This document shows positions 7,752 through 11,858 of a DNA stretch of 64,000 bases, one piece after another (position 1 is the first letter of the stretch; each line of letters begins with the position of its first letter). The notes beneath the pieces are model-generated. The model was not told where the DNA came from. It worked only from the letters and a program-made list of their open reading frames with translations, and did not search any database. The stretch is from Ministeria vibrans ATCC 50519 (lineage: Eukaryota; Protista; Filasterea), in contig CALSCP010000216.1 in assembly GCA_943704425.1 (NCBI GenBank), forward strand, positions 1 through 64,000. Reading direction: 5' to 3'. Made by a program: the position numbers and the translations under genes.

Positions 7752-8312
7752 TTACTTTCCGAGAACATACGAAGCGATTAAAGGAAACACAATGGTTGCA
7801 TCACTCTCGATCATGTACTGCGGTGTGCCTTGCTTCAACTTGCCCCAGGTGATCTACGAAAATTCGAGTCAACAGGAGAATCATAACAAAACGTAAATAT
7901 TACTATTATTTTTGGTACCTTCTCATTGGGCGGTGCACCGGAGTAGCCACCGTACGACGTGAGTGCCTCGCTGATTTGACAGAAGTACTGCCATGTGTCG
8001 ACGGGACGATCCATATCTTGGCGCAAAAGAGGAACAGCGCAAATGGCAAAATCACCCGCAATTCCTACATATAAAAATAACATAATTTGAGACATCGTTG
8101 CGCAGAATTCGGTGTTTAAATGTACCGCCTCCAATTTGGAAGAAACCAATCTTGCTTCCAAGCGCATCTTCCTTGGCATACCACTCGCACAGATGCTCCA
8201 TCTGCTCCACTCCCGAGCACACTGGATACCTTTCAATGAATGAATGCTCGTTCATTTTGACACCGAGTGACATCAGTGTGTGTGTGTGTGTGTATGTGTG
8301 TGTATGTATGTA

Positions 8313-8370
<58 letters not shown>

Positions 8371-9115
8371 GCTTACCCTTTGAGGTTGCCCTTCATCTTT
8401 TCGGCAACAATAATGTTTCCGCACGTACTGTCCTCCCAGCCAGGAACCCACACCTAACCAGACACAGAGGAAGGGAAAACCCAAAGAGATAAAGGAAAAA
8501 GAAAAATTACTGCGCATACATCTTCCTTTTGTGCAGGTGTGTGTGTCTTACCGGAATATCTTTCTCCGTCGCCGCGATAAGCCACGAGTTGACTGGATCA
8601 ATATCGTACGCGTGTTCAAGGGTCTTTTCCCGGATGATTCTGCACGTCGAGTAGAGAGACGAGTGAGATCTGTTGACTCAGCTGCGCACTCACACGCACA
8701 CGCACACACAAAGGCACACCACAAAGGCACACCACAAAGGCACACCACAAAGGCACACCACAAAGGCACACCACAAAGACACACACACACAGACACATGC
8801 AAAAAATACCGCTTGAAGAGATCAACGGGCATGATGCGATGCCCACTGGTGTCCGCCTCTTTCCAAATGCGAATGAGCTCCTTGGCACAGATTTTGAAGG
8901 CCTGCTCTTCCGGAATACACGTATCGGTGACTCGGTTAAAGCCCTTGGCGTGGAGTGCAGTGTCGTCCGCCTCGGAGATGGCACGCCAGTTTGGGATGCG
9001 GTAGTAACTGCAAGGAGGAAGCTGATTTATTTGTATACTCACATACGGAGAACATACATATATATAATATAATATAATACCCCGATAGACTATCTAAGAC
9101 GCAACGACGCACATA

Positions 9116-9160
<45 letters not shown>

Positions 9161-9179
9161 ACACCCACACCCACACCCA

Positions 9180-9210
<31 letters not shown>

Positions 9211-9730
9211 CATACAACCCCCCAGCTAGGACCCACGGCGAAGGGCGCCTACCTCTTGTTCGCAATGAGATTGAAGAAGTCCTCTTCGAGGTTGGCAGCC
9301 GTGCATGAGATGGCATGGATCTTGTCCTGACGAATCATTTCGCTCAGAGAGATGCCCAGCTCCGCCGTGCTCATTGCACCCGCCAAAGACACCACCATCT
9401 TCCCGCCCTTGTCCATCAGATCACAGTAGCCCTGGAGGGGAAAGAGGAAAAAAAGGTCCACTCAGAGAAAAACCCACAAAAAACACACAAGACAATATCT
9501 GCCGCACACGGGCAGATAGCGCTCGGTTCGCCAGCAATGGCTCTCACCTGAGCGGCCTCCACGGTCGAAGCAGCGTTGAAGTGGCGATAGTTCTTCAACA
9601 TGAATTCCTTGATCAGTCCATCCTTGTTGCCCGCACTGCCAGCTGCCATCGCCGCCGTTCCATGCACACTGCGCCGCATCATCGTCGACACAGATCCAAT
9701 TTTAGTCGCACATGTTGCTAAGCGAAGCAT
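7752..9730 (-). CDS. Bacterial-type deoxyhypusine synthase-like protein (possible homospermidine/aminobutyl transferase) with putative mitochondrial presequence; about 8 exons
   Basis: NYRHFNAA, LAGAMSTAELG, ISCTAANLEED, NRVTDTCIPEE, FQIGGG|IAGDF and YGGYSGAPPNEK|ITWGKL (catalytic Lys retained). N-terminus MLRLATCATKIGSVSTMMRRSVHG. Confidence 0.9.
8708..8780. repeat. Intronic 13-bp tandem repeat (acaaaggcacacc), ~5 copies
   Basis: Direct inspection within a DHS-like gene intron. Confidence 0.9.
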
Positions 9731-9947
9731 TTTGAAGACAAACGACAAAAATATTTTCGTTTGAAAAATCAAAATTGAAAATTGAAATTCTGTCAAATTC
9801 AAGTCGGCGTTTTGTTTTCTCTTTCACTGATTCTAGAAATTACTAATTAGAATCTAGAATTCACTCTTTTCGCTCGTATTCCATACATATACATACATCC
9901 CTACTCCGTTGGCTCACCTGCACATACTCAGCTCTAAGCAAACACAA
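9731..9947. promoter_or_regulatory. Putative bidirectional promoter between the DHS-like and SpeD-like genes
   Basis: 217 bp AT-rich interval between divergent start codons, with repeated aaattga. Confidence 0.6.
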
Positions 9948-11858
9948 ATGTATGCAACTCATCCTCTTCAAAAATATAAAAATCGTTAGCGTCAACGTCC
10001 CTGTGCGCACTCGCTGATGCACCACCTGTATAGTTCCACCCACACGATCCGCTGCAAGCGCATCCTCCATATTCGTTGTCATGTGATTTTTTTTGAAAGC
10101 GTTTTTTTTTTGTTTGAAATATCGTGTGAAATCACATCCGTCCCAAGTGAGCAGACGCCGCAATTGCCGCTGCCCTACCCGCATTTGTCTGTGCATACGC
10201 TCTACGCTGTTTTTATGTGTCACTCTTTGCCATTTTCGTCCCTTCCGGCGGCTTTTGTGGGTCGTTTGTGGTTAGGTGCGCCCGCACTGCATTGAGGCAC
10301 CCGCCTCGCTTCGTCCGCGCCCCTTTCACGCTGCCGCATGCCCGGTGTTGACGATCACGCCTACGTTGACTCTTACATATCTCTTTCTTCGCTTCTCTCA
10401 GTCGATTTGTTGCACTCCTTTTTCTTCTTTTTTTTTTCTTCTTCCTTCGTTCCCTTCTCTTTCGTCGCCTCTGGCGCCAGCTGTGCTGTGAACCAACCGA
10501 CGCCGGTGTTTGATGCCACTTACTCGACCGTGTCTCTTCTTCTCCGCAGGGCTCAATCGTGTGGAAAGCACGTCTTTCTCGACTTGCATGTCGACGGACG
10601 CATTGATTGCACTGGCGGCGAGGCGGACGACATGGGCTGGCTCATGTCGACGCTGAGTCGGCACATTCAACGCACGCGCATCCGCATTGTTCACCAAAAG
10701 AGCTTCCCTTACTACACAGTCGATGAGGATGGAAAGGCGGGTGCCGTTGCAGGGTTCTCGGGCATTTTCTTGTTGGACGAGAGTCACGCCAGTGTGCATG
10801 TCGCTCTCGACACGGGTATCGCACACACTCGCCTTGCACACAGCATGTTGCGCACTTACCCTCTCCCCACGGCAATCACTCTGATGCTTGTTTTTCCTCT
10901 TTGACCGTACAGGCTCGGTCATCTTTGATGTGTTTACCTGCGGTACCACCGACCCCGTTGTCATTGTCGATGGCGTTCTTTCCGACGTGCGCGAGCGCTT
11001 TGGTGCGTGCGCGACCGTCCTGCAACGGCACCAGACCAACCGTTTCTTTGATCGTATTCAACCCATTGGCAACACAAGTGTGGCGGGACCATTGCCTGTT
11101 GCTGAAGGTACAGTCCCCCCTCAAAAAAAAACTTTTTATTATGCAGAATTTATTTCAATTTCTTATTGTGTTCTGACCTTTTCGTTTGGCTCCTCCGTAG
11201 TTATGTGTATTGGAGGACACACATTTATGGATGTGACTGGATTCGTGTTCCCGACAGTGAGCCAAGGACCGTGGCTTATTGAGCGCATGCAGACGCACCT
11301 GACGGCAGCCCTGGCGGCAGAGCGACCCTCCGACCTTCCCACCAGCTGGGCCAATCTGCCTTCTCCATCTCCCTCTCCCTCTCCTACCAGCACCATTTCT
11401 ACTCCCACTTCATTCGTCAGCATGACTCTCCCCTTGCCCCGTCGCACCACCTCCGTCACCCACCGACAGCTTGTGTCACTGCCCCCGCCCGGCCGTGACT
11501 CCCCGCCTGGCTTTACGTGCTGCTGCATGATTGATGGCTACCACGTCACTGCTCACGCCTACGAAGACATTGGTACGCCACCCATATCGAATTTTTGCAG
11601 TGTTTTGCACGGGCAATAACTATAAGAATAACCCTGCATTGCTCCTTCTTAGGTCTGCTTGCTATTGACGTCCTGGTTGACGACAACTGGCGCGCCAACA
11701 GCATTATTGACGCCCTCACAGCCGACCTCAACTCCCTGCCAGGCGTCTCCGTCGTCATGCGGCATGCCGTCGCGCGCCTCAGCTCGTCGACCTCCTACGA
11801 CAACATTGCTGCGCTCGCGACTCTTGCCGCCCCCGCTCCTCTTTATGCCACCGAGTAA
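9948..11858 (+). CDS. Pyruvoyl-dependent decarboxylase with two tandem SpeD/AdoMetDC (class 1B) domains; domain 1 has the E|S cleavage site, domain 2 is degenerate
   Basis: Exons approx. 9948-9949, 10550-10815, 10913-11108, 11201-11572, 11653-11858. Domain 1: GKHVFLD...GFSGIFLLDESHASVH...IFDVFTCG. Domain 2: GGHTFMD...PPGFTCCCMIDGYHVTAHAYEDIGLLAIDV. An alternative in-frame ATG lies at 10338. Confidence 0.85.

Follow-up and report, generated by a model that had tools for sequence, protein, structure and literature searches.

Two divergent, intron-bearing genes in a 64,000-nt stretch of the Ministeria vibrans genome (the window, throughout) are candidates for both core enzymes of an agmatine-dependent homospermidine pathway, in which arginine would be converted to agmatine, agmatine to N1,N9-bis(guanidino)homospermidine (G44G) and G44G to homospermidine. 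We put the probability of this reading at about 0.65. One gene belongs to the deoxyhypusine synthase (DS) fold and resembles SpeY; the other is a SpeD-like gene whose best matches lie among the arginine-type decarboxylases denoted SpeDA. What we observe directly is the family membership, domain architecture and catalytic motifs of the two proteins and, across organisms, the linkage or fusion of their homologues.

The window consists of eukaryotic DNA whose introns are of the GT-AG type, and (GT)n or (AC)n microsatellites fill several of these. The two genes have 12 exons in all; every frame is open and every intron is GT-AG. This check of frames and splice sites confirmed both intron-bearing genes at the positions proposed in a first-pass annotation of the window. 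The spliced genes were analysed exon by exon, with single exons rather than joined proteins used in searches and trees. The genome searched comprises 29.7 Mb in 2860 contigs.

The SpeY-like gene has the following features.

7752-9730, minus strand: SpeY-like DS-fold gene with eight exons, supported by the frame and splice check, Pfam DS, colinear tblastn and per-exon hidden Markov models.
9730-9548, 9431-9253, 9007-8810, 8639-8552, 8453-8377, 8229-8126, 8064-7919 and 7853-7752, minus strand: exons 1 to 8.
7836-7954, minus strand, with the intron 7854-7918 inside: active-site motif ...GGYSGAPPNEK / ITWGKL... across the exon 7/8 junction.
9620-9730, minus strand: N-terminal extension of ∼ 37 residues, with three Arg, two Lys and no acidic residue, rich in Ala, Ser and Thr.

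The coding sequence amounts to 1077 nt in frame (358 codons plus stop) and is interrupted by seven introns. Pfam DS (PF01916) matches exons 2, 3 and 8, and the DS domain of P0070, a eukaryotic fusion protein described below, aligns colinearly with all eight exons at 50-67% identity (tblastn). The active-site motif quoted in the first-pass annotation exists and spans the exon 7/8 junction. ITWGKL opens exon 8, the catalytic Lys of WGK is kept, and in the family profile the motif aligns without gaps to structures of deoxyhypusine synthase (DHS), archaeal ones included. Relative to the catalytic Lys, the protein has Trp at -2, Glu at -6 and Tyr at -13. The Glu is equivalent to Glu293 of CdmS, which has been modelled as guanidino-binding, and the Tyr occupies the position of CdmS Leu286 and of human DHS Asp316, a spermidine-binding residue (PMC10981699). 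A non-acidic residue at -13 discriminates weakly, since the archaeal DHS structure 8PUT also has Leu there.

Exon 2 (59 residues), used in an exhaustive search with phmmer, returned 518 relatives, of which the top 150 share 62-85% identity with it. The relatives are for the most part stand-alone proteins of ∼ 320-340 residues and bacterial in appearance, such as P0023 from the metagenome-assembled genome of a Gram-negative organism, and the bacterial relatives of the gene include Flavobacteriales and Caldilineaceae. We built four group profiles, with the canonical DHS of the same Poseidoniales genomes as the outgroup, scored each exon singly and summed the bits. The gene scored 399 bits against the eukaryote-type SpeY-like group, 374 against the bacterial SpeY-like group and 346 against Poseidoniales SpeY, versus 13 against canonical Poseidoniales DHS. 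Trees were computed in a quick mode, for which exons 2, 3 and 7 were supplied singly, as fragments. The SpeY-type clade is 100% supported, apart from archaeal DHS, and the fragments lie inside it together with the eukaryote-type SpeYs. The sampled bacteria and archaea form their own side of a branch (SH-aLRT 94-96%), and eukaryotic SpeYs are not nested inside archaea or any sampled bacterial group; the root is unreliable because the outgroup branch is very long. The scores and the position of the fragments bear out the earlier proposal that the gene is of prokaryotic type and not an eIF5A-modifying DHS. Searches with exon 2 against plasmids (tblastn) and with single exons against the PDB (phmmer) gave no match, and none of the relatives that exon 3 retrieved from metagenomes exceeded 63% identity or was a close eukaryotic one.

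The partner gene and its introns are as follows.

10550-11858, plus strand: SpeD-like gene with four exons, A (10550-10815), B (10913-11107), C (11201-11572) and D (11653-11858).
10550-11107, plus strand: SpeDA-like repeat 1 (exons A and B), with the Glu-Ser site of LLDESH, the following His and the Cys of FTCG kept.
11201-11858, plus strand: SpeD-like repeat 2 (exons C and D), with Gly-Tyr for Glu-Ser, VDD for TCG and a low-complexity Pro/Ser/Thr insert.
10816-10912, plus strand: intron 1, phase 1, inside a Gly codon.
11573-11652, plus strand: intron 3, at the same alignment column and phase as intron 1.

A profile of archaeal SpeDA matches the gene colinearly twice, which identifies two tandem SpeD repeats. 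Exon A scores 29.7 bits (profile positions 9-69), exon B 27.6 bits (78-119), exon C 26.9 bits (2-32 and 47-72) and exon D 9.3 bits (75-120). The earlier identification of the partner as a SpeD-fold pyruvoyl decarboxylase finds support in these matches on four of four exons and in the Glu-Ser site of repeat 1. The SpeD domain of P0070 matches the end of exon A and, again, that of exon C, and the SpeD-like exons are 43-49% identical to the SpeDA of eukaryotic fusions over 30-35 residues. The profile of the fused family matches, in its N-terminal part, the class-1b structures 2III, 1TLU and 1VR7 of S-adenosylmethionine decarboxylase (AdoMetDC; E ∼ 1e-11) and, in its C-terminal part, DHS structures.

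Repeat 1 reads LLDESHASVH...FTCG where repeat 2 reads IDGYHVTAH...VDD. Since Gly-Tyr and VDD replace Glu-Ser and TCG, repeat 2 is predicted to be unable to form the pyruvoyl group. The codons at the junctions of introns 1 and 3 are GGC and GGT, both Gly. Because the two repeats share an intron column and phase, the duplication must have arisen inside the eukaryote, after intron gain. The exon model is further supported by a 1.2-kb contig of a near-identical strain (L007, 99.1% identity), because the differences concentrate in intron 2: 8 of the 11 fall there, that is, 8 in 93 intron bases versus 2 in ∼ 900 exon bases. A six-frame search of the whole genome with Pfam AdoMet_dc (PF02675) at E ≤ 0.001 gave no match, the window's own exon included, because that exon is too divergent. 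Exon A gave no match among phages (tblastn) and no candidates in a word search, and a word search with the open frame of exons B-C returned the near-identical strain fragment only.

The region between the two genes depends on where the SpeD-like gene begins.

9731-9947, no strand: divergent intergenic interval, AT-rich (33% GC), 217 bp under the split-start model only.
9948-10549, plus strand: putative split start AT (9948-9949) with a 600-nt 5' intron (donor GTATGC, polypyrimidine tract, CAG acceptor).

In the split-start model, AT at 9948-9949 is joined across the acceptor at 10549 to the G of the start codon at 10550. Such an AT|G start is plausible because of the GTATGC donor, the long polypyrimidine tract, the CAG acceptor and the position of exon A, which opens five residues ahead of the G-x-H that starts the SpeD domain in archaeal homologues. 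The alternative is the in-frame ATG at 10338, which heads an uninterrupted open reading frame. The 217-bp interval given in the first-pass annotation is exact in the former case and becomes 607 bp in the latter. Within the AT-rich interval, at ∼ 9838-9873, closely spaced palindromic motifs, TTCTAGAA / TCTAGAATTC, look heat-shock-element-like by eye, and these may be a shared regulatory site. On the other side of the interval, three introns of the SpeY-like gene are mostly microsatellite (8276-8369, 8702-8797 and 9119-9210); their repeats are (GT)47, a 13-nt unit × 7.4 and (AC)46.

Strong independent evidence that SpeDA and SpeY act in one pathway comes from their adjacency or fusion in archaea and from fusion proteins in eukaryotes, and it supports the functional coupling of the two genes posited in the first-pass annotation. 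We fetched 160 prokaryotic SpeY loci with their flanks. SpeDA is fused to SpeY in 22 of them and sits directly next to it (gap 0-4 bp) in 15; wherever such a locus comes from a named genome, that genome belongs to Poseidoniales. In 50 of the 160 loci an arginase-fold gene occurs no more than 3 kb away, and long archaeal contigs show speB followed by speDA-speY, the arginase-fold gene being directly upstream.

On the eukaryotic side, P0070 is a protein of 756 residues encoded by a single open reading frame on a marine metatranscriptome contig (L016). It consists of an Arg-rich N-terminus, AdoMet_dc (PF02675), a methyltransferase of the NNMT/PNMT/TEMT type (PF01234) and DS, in this order. A word search with P0070 recovered more three-domain proteins, including one from the dinoflagellate Polykrikos kofoidii (EukProt transcriptome), as well as two-domain SpeD-DS and SpeD-methyltransferase proteins and ∼ 60 clusters of SpeD-DS proteins of ∼ 431 residues from marine metagenomes. 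Where the genome is named, the last of these belong to Poseidoniales (Marine Group II, MGII). Among eukaryotic transcripts, P0070 and P0152-P0156 are SpeDA-methyltransferase-SpeY fusions and P0158 is a SpeDA-SpeY fusion. The three-domain proteins have Arg-rich N-termini and derive from metatranscriptomes of marine eukaryotes and the P. kofoidii transcriptome. Their methyltransferase domain also resembles guanitoxin GntF, and their architecture suggests a methylated polyamine or guanidino-amine product not yet described. Fusion machines for long-chain polyamines were reportedly described in diatoms by Michael in 2011; we rejected these as a counterpart, as they are fusions of AdoMetDC with aminopropyltransferase and not of the DS fold. 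A eukaryote-type SpeY also occurs as a stand-alone protein: P0243 (L195, 6266-7372), on a metagenomic contig of 68% GC, has 368 residues, is intronless, carries an Arg-rich presequence and is 56% identical to the window exons.

Two further observations concern these families. In P0219, from the EukProt data of Gymnodinium smaydae, the SpeDA domain has its Glu-Ser site intact and is followed in the same chain by a long hydrophobic C-terminal region that is apparently multi-pass membrane; the DS domain is absent. All five Poseidoniales genomes inspected (G001-G005; L105-L114) encode both a canonical DHS (∼ 300 bits, Pfam DS) and a SpeY-type protein (∼ 140 bits), a finding relevant to whether archaea encode agmatine-dependent as well as spermidine-dependent forms, as asked in PMC13625781.

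The M. vibrans genome contains the standard polyamine genes as well. Five exon matches on contig C2697, summing to ∼ 231 bits versus Pfam DS, represent a canonical DHS, against ∼ 25-29 bits for the best SpeY-like exon. A canonical class-2 AdoMetDC is found on C1740, spermidine synthase on C2720 and ornithine decarboxylase (ODC) on C2643. The expectation that a canonical DHS and AdoMetDC would exist elsewhere in the genome was thus correct. We rejected a canonical eIF5A-modifying role for the window gene, given the separate DHS copy that fills this role and the score of 13 bits versus archaeal DHS. Because ODC, AdoMetDC, spermidine synthase and DHS are all present, the SpeDA-SpeY module would be additional to the standard eukaryotic pathway. 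Neither a second copy of SpeY or SpeDA, searched for with P0070, nor a PF01234 methyltransferase was found in the genome. An agmatinase, however, is present.

Contig C335 (L013), 1258-2181, intron 2182-2242, exon to ∼ 2437: agmatinase-family gene, TIGR01230 being the best NCBIfam model.

This gene has one intron and an N-terminal extension of ∼ 55-60 residues, and its product is 44-58% identical to the speB that adjoins archaeal speDA-speY. It is probably the third enzyme of the pathway, judging by this homology.

Prokaryotic SpeYs begin ∼ 10 residues ahead of the YRHFNA motif, whereas the M. vibrans protein has the N-terminal extension listed above. Arg-rich N-termini are also seen on the eukaryotic homologues P0070, P0155, P0168 and P0243. 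The extension of the SpeY-like protein has the same make-up as those of the agmatinase and the eukaryotic homologues: it is basic, contains much Ser, Thr and Ala and lacks acidic residues. We regard it as a probable presequence-like organelle-targeting peptide. This composition suggests an organelle as the site of the pathway. The mitochondrion is the simplest choice because no match to the light-harvesting complex (LHC) family was found in the genome, so that the organism appears non-photosynthetic.

SpeYs of diverse phyla, including those of Winogradskyella algicola (Bacteroidota) and Caldilinea aerophila (Chloroflexota), couple two agmatines to G44G, and agmatinases turn G44G into homospermidine (PMC13625781). 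Thermus CdmS likewise makes G44G from two agmatines (PMC10981699). The SpeDA proteins of MGII, Gimesia, Solirubrobacter, Nannochloropsis gaditana and Tribonema minus are reported to decarboxylate l-arginine but not ornithine or lysine, those of MGII and Solirubrobacter fail to complement an Escherichia coli speD deletion, and the speB-speDA-speY cluster of MGII archaea is already described (PMC10407285). An agmatinase is needed as a third enzyme because the characterized SpeYs yield G44G from two agmatines.

For substrates, product, organelle location and shared regulation in M. vibrans, we infer a scheme modelled on these systems. In the SpeD-like protein, self-cleavage of repeat 1 at Glu-Ser would generate the pyruvoyl cofactor, and this SpeDA-type enzyme would decarboxylate l-arginine to agmatine. 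Repeat 2, a degenerate copy fused to the live domain, would serve as a structural pseudo-subunit. The SpeY-like enzyme would oxidize one agmatine with NAD, carry the 4-guanidinobutyl-derived imine on its catalytic Lys and pass it to a second agmatine, giving G44G, from which the C335 agmatinase would free two ureas to leave homospermidine. The first-pass annotation had the decarboxylase supplying putrescine, agmatine or decarboxylated AdoMet; of these three, homology favours agmatine. The gene set would be of prokaryotic origin and since domesticated, as introns, host-like GC content at third codon positions and N-terminal extensions would indicate. Its horizontal acquisition, already proposed in the first-pass annotation, fits the patchy eukaryotic spread within a prokaryotic family. 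The pathway would run beside the canonical ODC/AdoMetDC/spermidine synthase/DHS set, not in its place.

Several points weigh against this assignment. The SpeY-like gene misses the cut-offs of the NCBIfam SpeY equivalogs NF002699 and NF001980: single exons score ∼ 20 bits or less, and even the full-length relatives P0023, P0070 and P0243 reach 77-120 bits versus cut-offs of 450-500. As none of the proteins of its clade reaches the cut-offs, we assign the gene to the SpeY family, within a clade that lies beyond the reach of these models, although relatives from Bacteroidota and Chloroflexota have been confirmed by experiment. Pfam AdoMet_dc on exon A is marginal (17 bits, E 0.007, below threshold), repeat 1 is only 31-35% identical to the SpeDA domains of Poseidoniales fusions, which are among its best matches (E ∼ 1e-12 to 1e-13 in a local search), and its substrate is not legible in the sequence. 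The SpeD-like protein may or may not carry a targeting peptide, depending on where the gene starts. Linkage is absent at the P0243 locus, where the divergent neighbour, 220 bp off, encodes an unrelated acidic protein that is not SpeD-like. The C335 agmatinase is unlinked to the pair and could serve ordinary agmatine catabolism. Finally, the N-methyltransferase fused to these enzymes in other eukaryotes means that the eukaryotic end product may not be plain homospermidine.

The main alternative keeps both enzymes but gives them another end product: G44G itself (caldomycin), another aminobutylated or N-modified amine, or the result of a different acceptor. We consider this unlikely. In its favour, Thermus accumulates G44G as a natural product (PMC10981699), the agmatinase is not linked to the pair and the NNMT/PNMT/TEMT-type, GntF-like methyltransferase of the eukaryotic fusions implies further tailoring. 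Conversely, the M. vibrans genome yielded no PF01234 methyltransferase but does have a close homologue of the speB adjoining archaeal speDA-speY, and all agmatinases tested hydrolysed G44G (PMC13625781). It is distinctly improbable that the SpeD-like protein is a true second AdoMetDC or an ODC, with the DS enzyme acting like plant homospermidine synthase (HSS)/DHS to transfer the aminobutyl group of spermidine to putrescine. A canonical class-2 AdoMetDC is already in the genome, members of the SpeDA clade are reported to lack AdoMetDC and ODC activity (PMC10407285), and the SpeDA profile gives 27-30 bits per exon (A-C) versus 17 bits for AdoMet_dc. The tested SpeYs, moreover, make G44G whereas eukaryotic DHS does not (PMC13625781), and Tyr stands in place of human Asp316. 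In favour of this alternative, both folds permit it, the genes for spermidine and putrescine synthesis are in the genome, and the AdoMetDC families PF02675 and TIGR03330 (18 bits) are the only library families that match exon A.

We think it very improbable that one gene or the pair is a decaying remnant of an old transfer, without present function. Repeat 2 is degenerate and carries a low-complexity insert, and repeat 1 is highly divergent, which would suit decay; however, 12 of 12 exons are open with canonical splice sites, the catalytic motifs of the SpeY-like protein and of repeat 1 are intact and the strain differences concentrate in the intron (8 in 93 bases versus 2 in ∼ 900 exon bases). 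Least probable of all, in our estimate, is that the DS protein modifies a protein lysine, for example in an organellar translation factor, or is a non-catalytic DHS partner as in trypanosomatids, its SpeD neighbour being incidental. In favour are the catalytic Lys and NAD-type motifs, both kept, the presequence-like N-terminal extension and the pairs of DHS paralogues known in the PDB (6DFT). Its clade, though, is that of SpeY, distant from canonical DHS, its catalytic residues are intact, unlike those of dead paralogues, and the fusion or adjacency of SpeDA and SpeY in many organisms speaks against chance linkage.

The agmatine-dependent homospermidine pathway that we favour has its nearest counterpart in the speB-speDA-speY cluster of Poseidoniales (L024-L047), with the same three enzyme families. 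Poseidoniales SpeDA is the best prokaryotic profile match of the SpeD-like exons, and exon 7 of the SpeY-like gene is up to 75% identical to Poseidoniales SpeY. The archaeal genes are co-directional and adjacent or fused, whereas the SpeY-like and SpeD-like genes of M. vibrans are nuclear and divergent, with seven introns and three (or four) introns, respectively. Their agmatinase partner lies elsewhere in the genome, the SpeY-like protein is extended at its N-terminus and the SpeD-like gene is a tandem whose second copy is predicted to be dead. Bacterial SpeY/CdmS proteins (Thermus thermophilus, Anabaena, Winogradskyella, Caldilinea) share the DS fold, the catalytic Lys, the guanidino-binding Glu and the non-acidic residue at the Asp316 position, and the SpeY-like exons are 52-73% identical per exon to SpeYs of Bacteroidota, Chloroflexota and others. 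In contrast to these, the window protein is eukaryotic, has a probable presequence and falls below NCBIfam cut-offs built on Thermus and alpha-proteobacterial types.

SpeDA of N. gaditana (XP_005856029) and T. minus (KAG5182568) is likewise intron-bearing, of an MGII-related clade and attributed to trans-domain transfer (PMC10407285). Both hosts are photosynthetic stramenopiles, unlike M. vibrans with its genome devoid of an LHC match. In the portion of that paper available to us, no mention was found of a eukaryotic SpeY, of linkage to SpeY or of a tandem dead SpeDA domain. The SpeD1-degraded SpeD2 protein of Victivallis vadensis and class-2 eukaryotic AdoMetDC likewise consist of a live SpeD followed by a dead SpeD in one chain (PMC10407285); the M. 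vibrans duplication is independent of these, and its live domain would be an arginine-type SpeDA rather than an AdoMetDC. Closer to home, the canonical DHS on C2697 and the SpeY-like gene have the Pfam DS fold and the WGK catalytic lysine in common.

Homospermidine is held to be rare in eukaryotes, where it is made by a DHS-derived HSS or by a bacterial-type HSS. To our knowledge, it took until 2024-2026 for the agmatine/SpeY route to be elucidated, and this was in bacteria only. The pathway in bacteria, the gene cluster in MGII archaea and SpeDA in two photosynthetic stramenopiles are already known. We found no published report of a eukaryotic SpeY, of a SpeDA-SpeY gene pair in a eukaryote, or of SpeDA-methyltransferase-SpeY fusions or a live/dead tandem SpeDA; the search left subscription journals mostly outside, and such silence is weak evidence.

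A wider proposal can be put forward only tentatively. Several eukaryotes may have domesticated SpeDA-SpeY(-SpeB) as an organelle-targeted, probably mitochondrial, guanidino-polyamine/homospermidine pathway, turned into a methylating assembly line in some and with the live/dead tandem re-enacted in M. vibrans. We would count among them, with equal reserve, the heterotroph M. vibrans, the sources of dinoflagellate-associated transcripts, a high-GC picoeukaryote and stramenopile algae. Such a pathway might conceivably parallel the cytosolic spermidine/hypusine system. It is also possible, if rather doubtful, that the decarboxylase-N-methyltransferase-aminobutyltransferase fusions of some lineages yield methylated polyamines not yet described.

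If the assignment at the M. vibrans locus is correct, G44G and homospermidine are predicted in the organism, together with arginine decarboxylase activity in the live/dead pseudo-dimer. The duplicated SpeD gene with its matching introns would be a dated natural replay of the model for the origin of class-2 AdoMetDC. The natural fusions are Rosetta-stone evidence of joint action and point to a methylating branch not yet described. The scattered reports of eukaryotic SpeDA would be tied together, and a nuclear, intron-bearing SpeY with SpeDA and a matching agmatinase would extend the agmatine/SpeY route to eukaryotes.

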